DNA of 64,000 nt from positions 181,660,001 through 181,724,000 of the forward strand of contig OZ038378.1 in assembly GCA_964036045.1 (NCBI GenBank), given 5' to 3'. Shown here one piece after another: positions 31,401 to 45,165 of this stretch; position 1 is the first letter of the stretch; every line of letters starts with the position of its first letter. A model generated the notes under the pieces. The model saw only the letters and a list, made by a program, of their open reading frames with translations, did no database searches and was not told where the DNA came from. A program made the translations under genes and the position numbers. The stretch is from Eutreptiella sp. 'Long Island Sound 2002'. Taxonomy: Eukaryota > Protista > Euglenida.

Positions 31401-34400
31401 GTACAAAGAGAGGATCTAAGAACTAGGAGACAAAGAACAAGAGGCAGGATGCCCCAAAGACCGACCAAAGGAAGTGGGGTAGGAGTCGTCCCCCCATGGT
31501 CCTGAAGTTTTGGAACGCAATTTTTGGGGCATCCCAGAAATGCATTCACCTAAGAACTTTTCGGCGCTCTTCTGTGTTGCACAAATGGGGTTCCAATCCT
31601 TTTTCCAAAACTGTCGAGGCAAAAAGGCAATATGAAGCCAATAAAAGGGGAACAGTGGCTTTTTTTTGCAAGATACAATCAGCCACAGCAACTATATGAA
31701 AATTATGCTGAAGGTGGGGAGGAAATGTGGCCCTATCACTTGGCAGGAAAATGTGGCCCAATCACTGGGGGGGGGGGGCTGGGACCCCAGACCCCACCCA
31801 CTAGTGCTGAATTGTTCAGTGAACCCTGCCCCCAAAACACCCCAAAACATCCTCCCACAATGGCAACGGCATTCCCATAGAAAAAACATAGAGGTCACCA
31901 CCATAATCGGGTCACCACCATAATCGTTGTTCATACATTTCTCTACAAGTGAAGCAAGAACGAGAATGGGGCAAGATAAAATGCAAGGGAGGGGCGACAA
32001 GTGGCAAGACAGAAATCAGCGTCGCAGCCCCAAATCACTGAAAAAAAATGCTCTTCACGGACAACCAGGAAATGGCAAGTTCCATTGTTCCAAAGGAAAC
32101 AGTACCTCGTGCTGTTTGGACAAGAGCACTGTGATCGCTCCGTGGGGGGGGGAGGGGGGTTGGCATGGCAAAAGAAAAGATCTTCTTTCCTCAAGAACAT
32201 TTCTAGACACCAGAAATTGAAGTGAAGCGCCCCAAAACCGGGCAGAGAGGCGACACGGCTCCAGCAATGTAAAAAAAAAAACAAAGACCTTCAATTATCC
32301 CCACCGACATACCTAGGGTTCACTCAAATGTCTTCAAGTAACCTTGTCTGCTGACTCTGCCCGAACATGTCCTTGAACTCCCCAAATGCTATGGCACCGC
32401 AAGTTTGCGGTGTTCCCCCGGCCTTGTCGCACTACCATCAAATATATTGCGCTTCTGCTGCGAACATCGCCAGCTAGCTTTGTCCATACACGGAGTGCAC
32501 GTGGTGAGGGTGTAAAGTTCCTGTTTCGATTGCACCGCTCAACGTATAAAAGCAGTGGGTCGCACACATGCACAGCGCGCGCACACACACACACACACCC
32601 GCAGGGGACACACGCACAGATGGACAGGCAGACAAACAGAGGCAAGCAAGGCAGGGAGCCAGGCAGCTAGGCAGGCAGGCAGGCAGGCGAACAGACAGAC
32701 AGACAAACAGACGGACAGACAAACAGACAGCAGCAGGCGGGGCGGGCGGGCAAGTCGAAATACAGATCGGGTCCTCAGACGCACGGTGCATCATTATATC
32801 GCATTGCACGGCTTTGGGGGCAGAAAATCTCATCAAGAATCACAATGGCTTGCAGCAGTGCTCTCATATTCCGAACTTTTGAGGTCAGCCCCACCAGATC
32901 TGACACTGAGGCAGACATCCAGTTTGTCTGCAGAGGAAGTGGCGCCAACGGCAGAAATACATGACGAAATGGACGCAATGGTCAAGGAAGAGTGACTGGG
33001 TGCGCCCTCTGCTCCAGTGGTAGCTATTCCGGTTGAGGGTGAGCATGGCAATGGACAGCGGACTCGTGGCAAAGCCGTGGGCCGTAATGATCTGACTTGC
33101 TGGTCTGTCGGGAGTGTTTGAGGAAGGAAGGAAATCATATTAAGGAGCCGTCGGGAGTGTTTGACAAAACCGCCCCGAATTCCAACAGAGGTGCAAACAA
33201 CGATCAGGGTATGCCTCAATAGGCCGCGACGTCATGCAAAGCATGCGCCCAACAACTGCTAAAAACAATAAGACCCAACTTCCGACCCAGCGGCAAACAT
33301 ATCAGCCCCACATGATACTGATTGCGATCAGCAACGCAGCAACCCTCTACACTCACGGTCAACGATTGTATCTTGCAAACTAACCTTCTCTACACCAATC
33401 TCTTCTTCTCTTGCGCAAGCCTCTTGCGCTGTGGCGTGTCATGTGGTCTCCGACATCCCTTGTGAATGGGCTGCCTCGTGTGTAATTGGCGCAGTTGTAG
33501 GTCCTCCCTCTTGACCACTTCCTCAAACCAAACACGCCGCTCCAGTATGCACGTATCACCTTCGGGACCGCAAGATGCCCGTTTCACCGTTTCATCACCG
33601 GGTAGGACTGGCACAAGGCGCCGCTTGTGCAAGCGGGGGTCCTTAAAGACTAGTTGGTTACCAGGTGGCCCACTGGTAATCAGTGCCACGCCTCTTGTGT
33701 GACCGGCTCGTTGATGGACATCATGTGTGGGCAAAAGTGGGAGAGGGAATTGGGGTGCACCTTTGGGGATTGGGTTCGGAGAAAGTGGGGGGGCACAAGG
33801 CATAAGGATTGCCGGTTTGCACATCCGGTACAGATGCCAGCATATTGTCAGATGAGGTTAAAAAACCCGCGCTGTGACGCGGGTAATGTGACCGATCCCG
33901 TAGCATGTGCTTGACTGAAATCGGTTCAGTGGAATATCAGTGGATAGTGATAATCGGTACAGCAACCGCCGGCGGTGGACTGCCGACCGCCAAATCATGT
34001 GTCTAGACTTGCCTTGATCGCCCCAAAAACAAGAAAAATCTTGTCCCTGATGGGGGCCCGTTGATCCCAGGTCCATGGCAAAGGGTTATGGGTTCACTTC
34101 GCGACGCGTGACCCTTGAGACATAATTTGACCGCTGCGAGCGTTCAGGGAACACACGCGACACACCGCAGCCGTGCAAGGACGATGGCCCATGCTCGGAC
34201 CCTCCGGGTCACGAACGAGGCCATCAGTCAATCATGGCAAGAGTCTGCGGTCACGGCACGCACTGCCACGCGTGGGTTCGGATATCACGATCCAACGCGT
34301 GGGTCGCCAAAGGAAGGCGATTCAAACAGGGACAGTCGAAGTCAAGGAAAGCGACGGTGAGACAGGGGGGGCCGATTCTGCACAGCGCGGGCACAACGTG

Positions 34401-35007
34401 CCCACAGCGCCTGACAGTAAATTAGCTTTCCGGTGACCCACCCTGAAAACACCCACCATCGGGGAAGGTCCGTCCACAGGGCAAAAACAGCAGATTTAGA
34501 CAGAAATCTGGCATTTTTGGTGGGACGTATGATTTGTTTTAACTTGTTATCTGAGTTTTTCGACTGAGTAAGAATCTGGGCAGTCCTGTGTATGGGAACA
34601 CAATAGTTACTGCTGTCACCTTGGCCATCGCGAGAATGAGTCCAAAATAGCCTGCTTTTCGCACAGCGCACGGCGCGCCCCCAGTAGTAGCCAGACAAGA
34701 CGTGAAAACACCTCCAGGTCCACGACCGCCATCGGGCCCTCCATGTGCTCTCGCACCCCCTCAGCACTCCACACCCCCTCTGCTGGTTGTGCCCACGCCG
34801 CCGTTTGCGATTTTTCCGCGGGTGCTGCCCCACGGCGCAATGAGACCCCCGATCTCGACCTCCCGTGGACCCCTTGGGCATGGGAGACATCTACGTGCAC
34901 ACATGCAGCCCCACAGATAACGGGGCGAGGGGCAGGGGCGGGAATGGGGCGGCGCCAAATGGGCTTGGTTTGGGCTGGGCCAGGATGGTCAGGGACATCG
35001 AACGTAC

Positions 35008-35334: not shown

Positions 35335-35822
35335 ATAGAGAGAAGAATGAGTGGCTGTGCTGTGTTTCTGCAGCTGTGCTGATGGGACTGGGTGTGGGAG
35401 AGTTGTACAGCAGACGAGGTTCCCAAGGGTCACAGAGCTCTGTGGAGGCTTGCAATGAGCTGTACAGAGTAAGAGAGGCAGCGCTGAGCTACGGCAGGCT
35501 GCGCAAGCGTTGCCCATTGCTACAACCCCCCGGGGAGCGTTCTTGTTCCAGCAGAGCGTCATGGGCTTCATGAGGTGACCCGCCTACTTTGGTCTGCAGT
35601 TGGTGTTGCGCGATGTGGTTTTCTGGCGCACATGCCTTGAACGAGGCAGACTGCAGCACCCTACTGTCGGCTGCCGGCTGGAGATTGAGCACATGGGGCA
35701 CTTCGGCTACGGTCTCAGGCTTTGTCTCGGGCTTCGGCGGAAAATGTTTCCTCTTGACAAATGACAGTTGAACACAAAAAGGGGAAATGTTGCTGAAATT
35801 CGAAGTATTGGGGTCCGCATAC
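35335..35822 (-). mobile_element. Introner-like element, copy 2 (inside an intron of the neighbouring gene)
   Basis: Near-identical to the whole intron 37336-37805 (roughly a dozen substitutions plus small indels by eye). Starts GTATGCGGACCCC; the terminal TAG is changed to TAT. Confidence 0.75.
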
Positions 35823-36530
35823 CCCCCGAAGGAATGCTGAGCTATTGCACGTGTGCACAAGAGGCAGTCAGCACAAAGCGCAGAAAGAAATTTGGCTCGT
35901 CAGTGGCCTAAAAGACCATCATAGGCACCTTTCTGTCACAAGAATGAGGCACCAAGATGCCAGTGGGCAGGCCACCAACACGCATACCTCCCCCCCCCCA
36001 TCTCCCCGGTAGATGGGGTGCACGACCCGCCCAGACGTAAGAAGCTTTTTGGCAAAGGGAATTGTACCTTTAGAATCCTGTCCTGATGTTGGTGTGCGTC
36101 TTGCCAGCGCGGGGGTGCACAAATCTTGCCCTTGGGATATGCAGCCGGCACTGCACACCCACAACATTCCGCCACTTGTGGTGACTGTGACCCAGACCCT
36201 GGGAATCAGAAACGCGTGCATTTCGGTCATTCCCCCAACAGGACACACGCATCCGACGACTAATCCTGAACACGATGGCTGTGATACGGACTGGAAATCC
36301 AAAATGCGTCCTGGGGACACGGAGGGTGCAGAGCAGAAATGGTTTGGAAAACACAACACCGATGCTGCATAGGCCTTGATCAGGCCGCTTCCCGGCAGGC
36401 CCCTTGTACGGCATTCGGTGTGGGCGGGGCCTGCAAGTCCACAACTGCACCGGCAGGACGGCATGCAAACCCACGTGTGTGCTAGACAGCCCAACAGGCC
36501 CGAGCCCTCCACAGACCGACCCGTACGCAC

Positions 36531-36593
36531 CCAGGCCCCTTGGAGCCTACGCAGACCCACTAACAGGTCCCTGACCGCAAAATCCTCCTGAAC
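36531..36593 (-). CDS. Probable exon 2 of the long gene (VQEDFAVRDLLVGLRRLQGAW)
   Basis: Donor TGG|GTGCGT, 21 codons, phase 0/0. Confidence 0.45.
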
Positions 36594-36706
36594 CTCGCCG
36601 CAAATGGTGCGAAGCGGGCGGACAGTGCACGTCGGGCAACCAACCGACCGACCGACCGACAGACAGACAGACAGACACGCTGCCCCACAGAGGGCCAAGT
36701 CCTGAC

Positions 36707-36793
36707 CAAAACGTCCACGAAAGGGCTTCCGGGCCTACGCCTGGACCTCAACAGAACACTGGCCAATGATCCCCGTCGGTTCAGGGCCAACAT
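36707..36793 (-). CDS. Probable first exon of the long gene (MLALNRRGSLASVLLRSRRRPGSPFVDVL)
   Basis: ATG at 36793, donor TTG|GTCAGG, 29 codons. Confidence 0.4.
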
Positions 36794-37026
36794 GCGTCTT
36801 TTCACAGTTCAAGTGCCGTTGCTGGACCGCCCACCGCCGTCGGGTAACCGCAAAAAACTCTGCCACCGACAAGCTCGGACGGCCCTCCAGGTGACGGCCT
36901 TACGGGAAATCCCCGGGGCATGAACAATGATATGCAGGCCCCCCGAAGGGCAGAGGGCCCAAACCGCGGGTTCGGATGTCGCGGGCGCGTCTCACCTTCC
37001 CCCACGTCCGCATTCTGCGGAGGCAG

Positions 37027-37335
37027 CTACAGGGGCGCCATGGCCGAGATCTTCATGGTCCTCGGGGGCACGAAGTCGTTTCGGACGATGCGGCAGTTCG
37101 GCCGGAACGTCCGCAGGATGTTGACCTGCGCCTCGGGGATGCACGAGTTCGTGACGACCAGCTGGCTGAGGGTGTGCACGTCGTGCATGAGGTCCATGAG
37201 GGACTGCAGCTCGATGCCCACGCAGGAGGAGATGTCCAGCGCCTCTAGCTGCTGGCAGCAGCTGTTCAGCTGCCGGATGCTCTCGTCCGAGACCCCCTTG
37301 CACCCGCTGATCGACAGGGACTTGAGACACGGGCA
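37027..37335 (-). CDS. LRR gene, exon 6 (last): CPCLKSLSISGCKGVSDESIRQL...MAPL*
   Basis: Acceptor tttttctctAG at 37337-37336. Continues the LRR register. Stop TAG. Confidence 0.9.
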   Translation of the reverse strand, partial: CPCLKSLSISGCKGVSDESIRQLNSCCQQLEALDISSCVGIELQSLMDLMHDVHTLSQLVVTNSCIPEAQVNILRTFRPNCRIVRNDFVPPRTMKISAMAPL

Positions 37336-37805
37336 CTAGAGAAAAATGAGTGGCTGTGCTGTGCTGATGGGACTGGGTGTGGGAGAGTTGTACAGCAGAC
37401 GAGGTTCCCAAGGGTCACAGAGCTCTGTGGAGGCTTGCAATGAGCTGTACAGAGTAAGAGAGGCAGCGCTGAGCTACGGCAGGCTGCGCAAGCGTTGCCC
37501 ATTGCTACAGCCCCCCGGGGAGCGTTCTTGTTCCAGCAGAGCGTCATGGGCTTCATGAGGTGACCCGCCTACTTTGGTCTGCAGTTGGTGTTGCGCGATG
37601 TGGTTTTCTGGCGCACATGCCTTGAACGAGGCAAACTGCAGCACCCTACTGTCGGGTGCTGGCTGGAGCTTGAGCACATGGGGCACTTCGGCTACGGTCT
37701 CAGGCTTTGTCTCGGCTTCGGCGGAAAATTTTCCTCTTGACAAATGACAGTTGAACACAAAAAGGGGGAATGTTGCTGAAATTCGAGATATTGGGGTCCG
37801 CGTAC
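37336..37805 (-). mobile_element. Introner-like element, copy 1: forms the entire 470-nt intron 5 of the LRR gene
   Basis: CAG|GTACGCGGACCCC...TTTTTCTCTAG|TGC. Homology to 35335-35822 ends at both splice sites. Confidence 0.78.
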
Positions 37806-38408
37806 CTGCTTGAGGATGTGCTTGAGGGTCGCGTTGTCAAGCTGCGTCACCCCCGACAGGTCCAGCCGCTTCAGGTTCCGGATGCCGTTCGCGAGCGCGT
37901 GCAGGCCCGCGGGCCGCAGCGTGTCCTGCGAGCACAGCTTCATGATCAGGACGGCCAGGCGGGTGAGCCGGCTCCCGATGGCCGCGACCCCCATGTCCCC
38001 GACGCTCGTGCAGCCGCTCAGGTTGAGCCACTCCAGCGCCGGGCAGTACTGCGAGATGGCGATGAGGGACTGGTCCGTGAGGCCGGCGCAGTACGACAGG
38101 TCGAGGGCCCGGATGCGGCGGCTGCTGTGCAGCGTCCGGAAGGTGGACACGCCCCCGTGGTCGAGGGGGAGGCCGGAGAGGCACAGGACTTGGAGCTGGG
38201 GGCAGTTTTGCAGGAGCCGCGCGACGGCCTCGCCGGACACGTTGGTGCAGTGGCTGAGGTTCACGAGGGCCAGCAGCTGGCAGCCCTCGGCGATGCGGAT
38301 GATGGTGCGGCTGGACAGCTGCATGCAGCCCGCGAGGTTCAGGAGCTTGAGGTTCGGGCAGAACTCGCCGATCTTGAACAGGAGGTCGTCGCTGAGCCAC
38401 GTCTGGCC
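37806..38408 (-). CDS. LRR gene, exon 5: cysteine-containing LRRs (FBXL/AMN1-type; CPNLKLLNLAGCMQLS, CPQLQVLCLSG, CPALEWLNLSGCTSVGD)
   Basis: About seven LxxLxLxxC repeats, GC3-rich, acceptor gtgccgcAG, donor CAG|GTACGC. Confidence 0.93.
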
Positions 38409-38609
38409 CTGCGGCACAAGAAACGGCGTGGGGATGCGGTGGACGGGGGATGGCGGGGGGGGTGCCTCCGCATTCCACGGTCCCAATGGCTGCGGGAACA
38501 AAGCAGCGAATTGGGGTCCTGCACGCTGCGCATACGAGGGTTAGCCTCGAGGCAGGACGGGGCTGTGCCGCCGGGCCACCTCCCTACGCCTCGCCCCTTG
38601 TGTACGCGC

Positions 38610-38894
38610 AGAGAAGGTCTCGTAGTTCAGCGGTCATGCACATGACGCCTGAACTAAAGGTGCTCGGTTCGAATCCCGGTGGAGGCCAAACGCAGTGACC
38701 TAGGCGCTAGGGTGCTGGTGACCCCGCGAGCCGGAAGGGACGCTGCGCACGGTTCGAACCCCGGTGGGGGAGGAACGCAGTGTCCTAGGCGCTAGGGTGT
38801 CGGTGACCCCGCGAGCCGGAAGGGATGCTGCGAGGGACAGGTAGGGATCACTGATACGCTGGAGTTCGCAGATCGCCCGAGCAACTTACCTTTA
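38610..38894 (+). mobile_element. tRNA-Phe-derived SINE with duplicated B box and 14-bp target-site duplication
   Basis: tRNA-like head at 38616-38688 (A box TAGTTCAGCGG, B box GGTTCGAATCC, CTGAA..CTAAAGGT like tRNA-Phe). Internal 85-bp duplication with a second B box at 38751. Flanked by CCTTGTGTACGCGC at 38596-38609 and 38895-38908. Confidence 0.8.
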
Positions 38895-39996
38895 CCTTGT
38901 GTACGCGCCGCGAGGGAAGGACCCTCGCCAAGGGCTTAGGTCTCTTCCTCGCTGGCCCTTCCGTGGCCCGTGCCGGGGCCTGCGTGTCCTCCCTCTGGCG
39001 CGGCGACGATCTCCCCTGCCCCGATCCCTCCGTCGGGGCTCCTCCCCTGGTCATGCCCGGCGCAAACAGGCCTCTGGCCGCCGTCCATCTCGGCGGCGTC
39101 GCAATGGCTGCGGGAACAGGCCAGACCATTTAGGTCCCGCACACGGTGCGTACGGGGATCGGCTTAGAGAGGCTCTAAGTCCAACATGCGATCCTGTTGT
39201 TCTGACGAGGGCGTTGTTCTCGCAAAGGGGGCGGGCGGTACAATTGCCGCTTGTTCCCCTCGGCCTCTTGTCCCAGAGTGCGGCCCGCGCTGGAGACGTC
39301 GTGCGTGGGCCCCCTCCCAGCGCCTCTGATCTCCGCGTACTCTCTGGGGATCCGTTCCGCACACGCTCCAGGACGAGGGTGGGGGTGGGTGGGTGGGGGG
39401 CGGGCACCTCGATAATGCAGCCCGTGACTCGCCCGCCCCGATAAGATGAGCCGCTGGTGTCCGGCAGAGGGGCCGTATCTCGTTAGGAAGTGGCCCGATG
39501 CCATACGCCACGAAGCAGCACACATTCCTGTCACACCCAGAATTCCGTCGGTGCCTGCTGCATTCAGTGCCAGTAGGACCCAGCTGAAGATTGTGCGAGC
39601 TATGCAGGTATACTGTGGTATTGCAGGCGCAAGCATATCGCTTAGGTATTGGCAGGGGATTTCAGGGGTGTTGTGTTCATGCAGCACGGTATTCGAGGTG
39701 GATGTTGGTGTGTCATGTATGAGCAAGGCAGTGTTGCAGGAAGACGTTGGGTCCAACATGCAGCAGACTGGCACACAAGTTTTGAAAATATGCACAAGCA
39801 CCGCAGCCCCTTGTGGAACGGTCATTCCTGGTTCTATGGCGTTTTCGAAGTACCGCAGGAACCGTACCACTGTACTGAACAGAAAACGTGACGTGGCGGA
39901 CCCTGGTGGCACATCTGTACATGAGGATGGGTGGGTGTGAGCAAGCAAGTGTTAGTGTCAGTGTGCCTGTGAATTTCGGTGTGAGTGAGTGTGGAC

Positions 39997-40160
39997 TAGG
40001 GAATCAGGCCGAATTCCCGAATTCGCACTTGGGATTCGAATTCGCCCCGAATTCGCCTGGGGGCTCTAGTGTAATGCGAATTCGCGAATTCGAATTCGTT
40101 CTTCGAATTTGACCGAATTCGAATTCGATTTTTTGAATTCGGCCCGAATCTGAGACCCTA
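39997..40160. mobile_element. hAT-like MITE containing 10 GAATTC sites
   Basis: Ends TAGGG...CCCTA with TCAG and GGCCGAATTC inverted matches. Flanking 8-mers GTGTGGAC and GTGTAGAG (6/8 match). Confidence 0.65.
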
Positions 40161-40237: not shown

Positions 40238-40812
40238 CTCCAACATGATCTCCTCCACATCACCGCCCTTTTCCGTGAGCAGTGCCGCAAGGCTCTCGTC
40301 CACCCACGCAAACGCACAGGGGTCGTCATCGCACGAGAAAGCCATGGACGGCGTGGGCCCGATGCCACTCGAGGGGCCCGCAGTCTGCGGGGGGTTGAGC
40401 ACGTTGAGCTTCTTGAGGTGGTCGGGGAGCTTCTCCGTGAAGGAGGAGGTGCTCTCGGGCGTCGTGATGATCAGCGTGTTGCCCATGCGCTGGCCCTGGC
40501 CGCAGAGGTACTGCTGCAGGACCGGGCGGCGCAGCGTGGGGTTGTACACGCTCACCAGCTTCTGCGTGACGATCTTCACGCGCCGGCGGCCCGCCACGTC
40601 GTCTACCGGAGTGGGCATGTGCCCGGGATCGGCGTCGACGTTCTCATGCTCGCACTTGGAGTCCACCACGGAGTTCCACAGGTTGAAGTGGCTGTCCATG
40701 CCCAGGGCCGCAGACAGGGAATAGGTCTTCTCCTCCGGCACGTTGGTCTCGGCGTCTTCGGACTCGTCTGCTTCGGAAGAGTCGTCGCTCCTGCCGTCGA
40801 ACTCGATCTCCC
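40238..40812 (-). CDS. LRR gene, exon 4 (acidic/low-complexity, then VKIVTQKLVSVYNP...DVEEIMLE)
   Basis: Acceptor aaacctccAG (phase 1), donor GAG|GTCAGT (phase 0), GC3-rich. Confidence 0.85.
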
Positions 40813-44907: not shown

Positions 44908-45165
44908 CTTTGAAAGGCCGGGGCTGCCAGCCAACGTGTAGGGATAGTTCATTTTGCAGGAGAAGTACGGTGGAATGCCATGCTGCTGCTTGAACTCCTC
45001 TTCCGAACGGATGGGCTTGTGTGTGGCCACTGAGATAGGGGGCAGCACCTTCTCGACCCGAACCAGGTGACGCTTTGCGCTGCTGAAAGGCGAGGCCGAG
45101 ATCTTGTTCTGCTGGTACCGCTCATCGAGAAAGGGAGAACGGATGTACTGCCCGTCCATTGCCAT
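44908..45165 (-). CDS. LRR gene, probable exon 1 (MAMDGQYIRSPFLDERYQQNKISASPF...SPGLSK)
   Basis: ATG at 45165, donor AAG|GTGTTT. The six exons total 2745 nt = 915 codons including the stop. Confidence 0.6.

Follow-up and report, generated by a model that had tools for sequence, protein, structure and literature searches.

Introners and fungal introner-like elements are sequences that correspond exactly to an intron and recur in the genome. Each family has tens to thousands of members, which sit in genes unrelated to one another. In introners of the DNA-transposon type, the splice sites come from TIRs and a TSD; TIRs are missing from the fungal classes and from some of the algal ones, and fungal introner-like elements have a stable predicted structure. 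Introns also arise singly: the neointrons of Daphnia pulex (PMC4202315, PMC3020277) are one-off insertions into exons that repeat a few exon bases directly at the far end of the intron, show no transposon features and are removed by the ordinary spliceosome. Their direct repeats, 4 to 12 nt long and due to staggered breaks, are the footprint of new introns in this organism (PMC4202315), and no source is known for most of the neointrons. In intron transposition by reverse splicing, as modelled in PMC11146597 and, for the proposal made for Oikopleura, summarized in PMC4122922, the copied unit is a whole intron and its insertion is clean; the model places both copies in the same strand orientation in or near one transcription unit and expects a complete GT-through-AG copy. 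In euglenids, the positions of conventional introns are reported to be conserved, frequent gains being confined to nonconventional introns (PMC3935182), which probably derive from MITE-like insertions (PMC3935182, PMC12501133).

The locus described here lies in a window of 64,000 nt, i.e., the whole stretch of Eutreptiella DNA that was analyzed, and consists of a 470-nt intron of an LRR gene (copy A) and a near-identical sequence 2 kb away (copy B). Like an introner, copy A is exactly an intron and recurs in the genome, and it has no TIRs, as is the case in the fungal classes and in some of the algal ones. It differs from these families in that there are two copies, one of them an intron, that its 470 nt adopt no stable structure, and that only a 2-nt AG stands where DNA-transposon introners have a TSD. 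In common with the Daphnia neointrons it would be a one-off insertion into an exon and lacks transposon features, the AG may correspond to their direct repeat of exon bases, and it is likewise predicted to be spliced by the ordinary spliceosome; however, the AG is only 2 nt long, and a candidate donor can be identified in the same orientation at a distance of 2 kb. A whole-intron unit, a clean insertion and the common orientation in or near one transcription unit would agree with the reverse-splicing model, whereas copy B has no 3' AG. The euglenid nonconventional introns occur in the same lineage, but they carry the signature N3CDG...CHGN5-6 and pairing ends, both of which copy A lacks, having GT-AG borders and a pyrimidine tract instead.

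The LRR gene and its intron

The host gene of copy A is a multi-exon gene on the minus strand, extending from approximately position 45150 to 37027 of the window, with the Pfam domains LRR_4 and LRR_6 and LRRs of the FBXL15 type (Table 1; a slash in sequences marks a junction throughout). Its exons were used as separate queries, and no transcript-derived protein of the gene itself was present in the databases searched. The nearest relatives are euglenid proteins, P0004 being 66% identical over the big exon and P0005 (EukProt Euglena gracilis EG_transcript_2505) 58% identical; all relatives used (P0004, P0005, P0009, P0011, P0016, and P0153) are derived from transcripts, so that introns cannot be read in them. 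A search of metagenomes for loci related to this one gave no match. Copy A is inserted in phase 0 between ...ILKQ and CPCL.... Because P0004, P0005, P0009, P0153, and the paralogue described below run gap-free across this junction, removal of exactly 37805-37336 restores the protein without an indel (...ILKQ/CPCLKSL...), in accordance with the preliminary description, which had regarded the sequence unit as a whole spliceosomal intron. Its borders, GTACGC...CTCATTTTTCTCTAG, provide GT, a 3' pyrimidine tract and AG. With AG at both flanks, the intron can slide by 2 nt, and it matches three of five positions of the 5' consensus of E. gracilis conventional introns, GTGTG (PMC11170887).

The possibility that copy A is a nonconventional or intermediate euglenid intron was rejected on the basis of its GT-AG borders, the absence of the signature N3CDG...CHGN5-6/R at all three compatible slide positions, and the failure of its ends to pair (cofold energy, -2.3 kcal/mol, versus a shuffle mean of -6.6). 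The fold of the complete intron is equally unremarkable (MFE, -134.0, versus a shuffle mean of -132.9; z = -0.15). No functional RNA was detected in the intron with Rfam, either at gathering thresholds or at E ≤ 1, and ARAGORN found no tRNA. Judged by these features, copy A is a conventional U2-type GT-AG spliceosomal intron in phase 0.

Table 1. Features at the locus, in window coordinates
Feature	Position	Strand	Description
Next exon upstream of LRR gene	40238-40786	-	End ...IMLE, followed by GTCAGT; located by tblastn searches of the window with P0004, P0005, and P0009
LRR exon upstream of copy A	37806-38408	-	201 codons, end ...LKHILKQ; Pfam LRR_4 and LRR_6; 58-66% identical to euglenid P0004 and P0005
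Copy A	37336-37805	-	470-nt GT-AG phase-0 intron of LRR gene; GTACGCGG...TTTTTCTCTAG
Last exon	37027-37335	-	102 codons and TAG stop, start CPCLKSLSISGC; Pfam and homologue alignments
Left copy of putative R1 target duplication	35981-35988	-	GGTATGCG, after a G10 run (35990-35999) and AG
R1	35823-35984	-	5'-truncated retroposon-like repeat, ~160 nt; adjoins 5' end of copy B; 3' end ...GCATTCCTTC(G)n
Right copy of putative R1 target duplication	35816-35823	-	GGTATGCG, the base before copy B and the first 7 nt of copy B; just after the G-tail of R1
Copy B	35339-35822	-	Twin of copy A; GTATGCGG...TTCTTCTCT, then CTAT where copy A has AG

A genome search with P0004 identified two members of the LRR family only. 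The second (G000:C10, ~23.307-23.310 Mb, locus L047) is ~50% identical; it reads ILKQTPCL uninterrupted, with no intron at the site of copy A, but 12 nt (exactly 4 codons) farther upstream, at CQ/ILKQ, it is interrupted by an intron of 1.5 kb. This neighboring intron (L047 5226-6704, ~23.308-23.310 Mb) seems to start with GC (CAG/GCATGT...CATGCAG/ATT) and is probably of the GC-AG type; an alternative donor, GTAAGC, lies 21 nt downstream and would add seven residues. A further intron of the paralogue falls within the region that forms a single 603-nt exon in the LRR gene. Since the introns of the paralogue are differently placed, the intron positions of the 3' region have changed since the two genes separated.

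Several repeats are present in the intron, 1.83 kb in length, that precedes the big LRR exon. On the plus strand, positions 38662-38831 comprise two tandem 85-nt units, 88% alike, with the tRNA T-arm-like sequence GGTTCGAAYCCCGGTGG; ARAGORN calls no tRNA there, and the units are probably the remnant of a tRNA-derived SINE. A palindromic stretch rich in GAATTCG/CGAATTC (here the slash separates alternatives) is located at 40010-40150 on the minus strand, and a similar stretch, rich in CGCGAAATT, in the intron of the paralogue (L047 6340-6500); the two may belong to a shared MITE family. In addition, a 72-nt direct repeat with 72% identity is present at 38480-38551 and 39098-39169. On the minus strand it carries the 10-mer GGACCCCAAT, which also occurs near the 5' end of copies A and B, a coincidence that is probably due to chance.

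The twin and its surroundings

The preliminary description had reported a near-identical twin of the 470-nt intron ~2 kb away, with its limits at the splice sites, and this observation is confirmed. Window positions 37806-37338 align with 35823-35339, both on the minus strand, in MAFFT, a repeat search of the window and blastn, with 94.6% identity over 485 columns. The 468 aligned nucleotides contain 10 substitutions (JC distance, 2.2%), and there are four indels of 1, 1, 14, and 2 nt, the 14-nt one lying between CACAG direct repeats. The substitutions are clustered, eight being located in the first 172 nt versus two in the remaining 296 (p = 0.006), and they include a C/T difference at intron position 4, which has a CpG context in copy A. 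The likeness opens at G/GTA, one base ahead of the 5' GT, and closes at ...TTCTCT, immediately before the terminal AG of copy A, with no extension into the exons. While the 5' ends match exactly, copy A ends in TCTCTAG and copy B in TCTCTCTAT, CTAT taking the place of the AG, a difference that had been pointed out before. Because the homology covers intron positions 1-468 and stops ahead of the AG, this dinucleotide behaves like a 2-nt target duplication; as the only repeat at the ends of copy A it is within chance, however, and inherent to any AG/GT...AG intron. The repeat search of the window revealed no inverted repeats at the copies, so the earlier statement that there are no TIRs and no real TSD stands.

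Alignments of the 60-nt flanks of the two copies gave chance-level scores in the blastn comparison, and a sensitive comparison of the 3.3-kb regions around them found no second shared segment. A segmental or tandem duplication was rejected, as the flanks share no similarity. The preliminary description had proposed that its interpretation would fall if only two copies existed and the similarity ran past the splice sites; the copies are indeed two, but the similarity ends at the splice sites.

The count of two is genome-wide. A whole-genome DNA search with the intron, as had been suggested for a check, returned only copies A and B from the 2.28-Gb genome, at E ≤ 1e-5 as well as at E ≤ 10, and sensitive blastn found no more copies inside the window. 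An 18-nt motif from the 5' end, searched with up to two mismatches, gave 77 matches versus 702 for its reversed control and is thus not enriched. A 117-amino-acid open reading frame (ORF) spanning copy B matched only itself among 5.8 billion clusters, and a 37-nt core of the element had no match in the JGI metagenomes. With only two copies genome-wide, the defining feature of introners is gone: the pair is a one-off, local two-copy event and not a mobile family, and the earlier proposal of an active or recent intron-generating family is not supported.

The LRR gene that contains copy A ends 1,205 nt before the start of copy B, counted from its stop codon, and both copies have the same orientation. 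Copy B had been assigned to a neighboring gene, as part of a larger intron, for which the ORF and Pfam analyses gave no support: the ORFs between 31.9 and 36.7 kb have no Pfam match and look like chance GC-rich frames, and no coding flanks were found at copy B. The DNA flanking it (36900-36008 and 35338-34683) is unique in the genome except for two dispersed repeats. One repeat, of ~315 nt, is situated at 34368-34682, 650 nt downstream of copy B, and has >2,100 first-look candidates with 81 to 86% identity. Tetranucleotide microsatellites of the (CAGA/GACA)n type occupy 32604-32743 and 36639-36699, on either side of the copy B region.

Immediately upstream of copy B lies the repeat R1, whose family has >2,600 first-look candidates in the genome at ~90% identity. 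Its copies have a common fixed 3' end, variable 5' truncation, G-runs on both sides and a full length of ~265 nt; G-led target duplications are found at copies L056, L057, and L058. By these features, R1 qualifies as a putative G-tailed retroposon that targets G-runs. If GGTATGCG is read as its target duplication, the insertion of R1 interrupted what had been an unbroken sequence, ...G10-AG/GTATGCGG..., and with R1 read out, both copies would originally have been preceded by AG. As the duplication contains the first 7 nt of copy B, the 5' end of copy B would predate R1. Joint insertion of R1 and an intron cDNA by template switching of a reverse transcriptase was rejected as the main reading, since the duplication flanks R1 alone and includes the first bases of copy B; no repeat flanking R1 and copy B together was found.

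R1 also bears on the age of the pair. It differs from the consensus of its family, which was built from few copies (nine), at 9 of 154 sites (5.8%). Its nearest relatives are 91 to 92% identical, corresponding to 7.1% substitution divergence, and none of 40 scored copies exceeds 92%. The per-lineage divergence of copies A and B is ~1.1%, and that of R1 is higher (Fisher p = 0.002); the difference is not significant when only the first 172 nt of the pair are considered (p = 0.16). A simple clock would place R1 before the separation of the two copies. If copy B predates R1 and R1 predates that separation, intron A would have been gained recently, with copy B as its parent. This argument is suggestive only, because the substitutions are clustered, the consensus copies few and position 4 part of a CpG; this CpG in copy A hints that the T at position 4 of both copy B and the R1 duplication is derived, which would place R1 after the separation. 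Together, the duplication and the age of R1 weakly favor the view that the downstream copy is the parent and that the intron was gained recently, in a single event.

Routes by which the intron could have been copied

We tentatively prefer the reading that copy B is older and copy A a recent gain, made when a staggered break was repaired by copying, at the DNA level, from a template nearby; both the direction and the mechanism are what we infer from the two sequences and their sites. Specifically, a 468-nt stretch (GTAYGCGG...TTCTCT) would have been copied from the region of copy B into the exon at ...AAGCAG^TGC.... The staggered break would have been positioned at AAGC-AG-TGC, with the 2-nt AG arising at the far end as a fill-in duplication, and the insert's own GT and pyrimidine tract together with the repeated AG would have amounted to a complete intron from the outset, one that can be excised precisely. 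The restriction to two copies in 2.28 Gb, the lack of homology between the flanks and the clean, indel-free removal count in favor of break repair, as does the sole paralogue, which is uninterrupted at the site (ILKQTPCL). On the other hand, we estimate at ~1e-4 per event the chance that a random 468-nt filler starts with GT and ends in a 15-nt pyrimidine stretch. The perfect, indel-free fit would be natural for a unit defined by splicing, the AG repeat is too short for a footprint, and for the direction from copy B to copy A, the age argument drawn from R1 is weak.

An unlikely but serious contender is RNA-mediated transposition, in which reverse splicing by the spliceosome placed the excised intron in its own pre-mRNA, in a read-through transcript or in single-stranded R-loop DNA, and the insertion was subsequently fixed in the genome. 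Either copy may then be the parent, and a nonessential copy B would later have lost its 3' AG (TAG to TAT, with slippage of CT). The limits of the duplicated unit, set by the splice sites within 0 to 2 nt at each end, and the perfectly clean insertion would follow naturally; both copies are also on the strand of the LRR gene, 2 kb apart, and AG precedes both sites (...CAG/ at copy A and, with R1 removed, ...GAG/ at copy B). Moreover, the LRR gene is without the two introns that its paralogue has in the 3' region, as cDNA-mediated recombination would give, and reverse splicing is described as plausible, having been seen twice in yeast, in PMC11146597, which cites Lee and Stevens 2016. The missing terminal AG of copy B nevertheless requires a substitution and an indel within the last 4 nt, which we estimate at ~1e-3 under neutrality. 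The ORFs at the flanks of copy B, which would have to be transcribed, have no Pfam match, no footprint of a reverse transcriptase was found, and natural examples of the process are nearly absent. That the locus represents a snapshot of spliceosome-mediated transposition, with an excised conventional intron that went back into its own transcription unit, or the R-loop DNA of this unit, at a distance of 2 kb, we regard as slightly less probable still; if true, parent and daughter would both still be readable, with a datable retroposon at one junction.

Distinctly improbable is the explanation that the copies are old duplicates, formed in either direction and kept alike by gene conversion between close direct repeats, in which case their 2% divergence would be uninformative about the time of origin of the intron. 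The arrangement as direct repeats 2 kb apart suits such an exchange, the clustering of the substitutions is what conversion of the 3' two-thirds would give, and R1 would bound the conversion tract on its 5' side; yet the coincidence of the limits with the splice sites is left unexplained, and one recent event would be the more parsimonious scenario. Very improbable indeed is a TIR-less introner-like family that is, or was until recently, active in making introns: one copy is exactly an intron, and TIRs and TSDs are absent as in the fungal introner-like elements, but against this stand the mere two copies even at E ≤ 10, the nonenriched 5'-end motif, the unstable fold, the position of copy B outside any recognizable gene, and the lack of matches to the ORF and the 37-nt core in public data.

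A possible intron gain in a euglenid

The overall interpretation given in the preliminary description is thus retained in part. An intron-sized twin without TIRs or a real TSD exists on the same strand, and intron creation by copying is a live possibility; the family and the location of the twin in an intron of another gene are not supported, and copies A and B lend no support to a genome-wide intron-generating family in this lineage. What the locus offers is a candidate case in which one conventional intron was gained recently and its donor can be identified: it may have originated in a copying event that was local and happened once. As the positions of conventional introns are reported to be conserved in euglenids (PMC3935182), a recent gain of this class would be unusual there. 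It is rare for the exact sequence of a conventional intron to survive 2 kb away in a twin that is not an intron. The putative donor and product can be read together at one locus with the site of insertion and with the retroposon, which serves as an independent marker of time, so that the choice between break repair and reverse splicing becomes directly testable.
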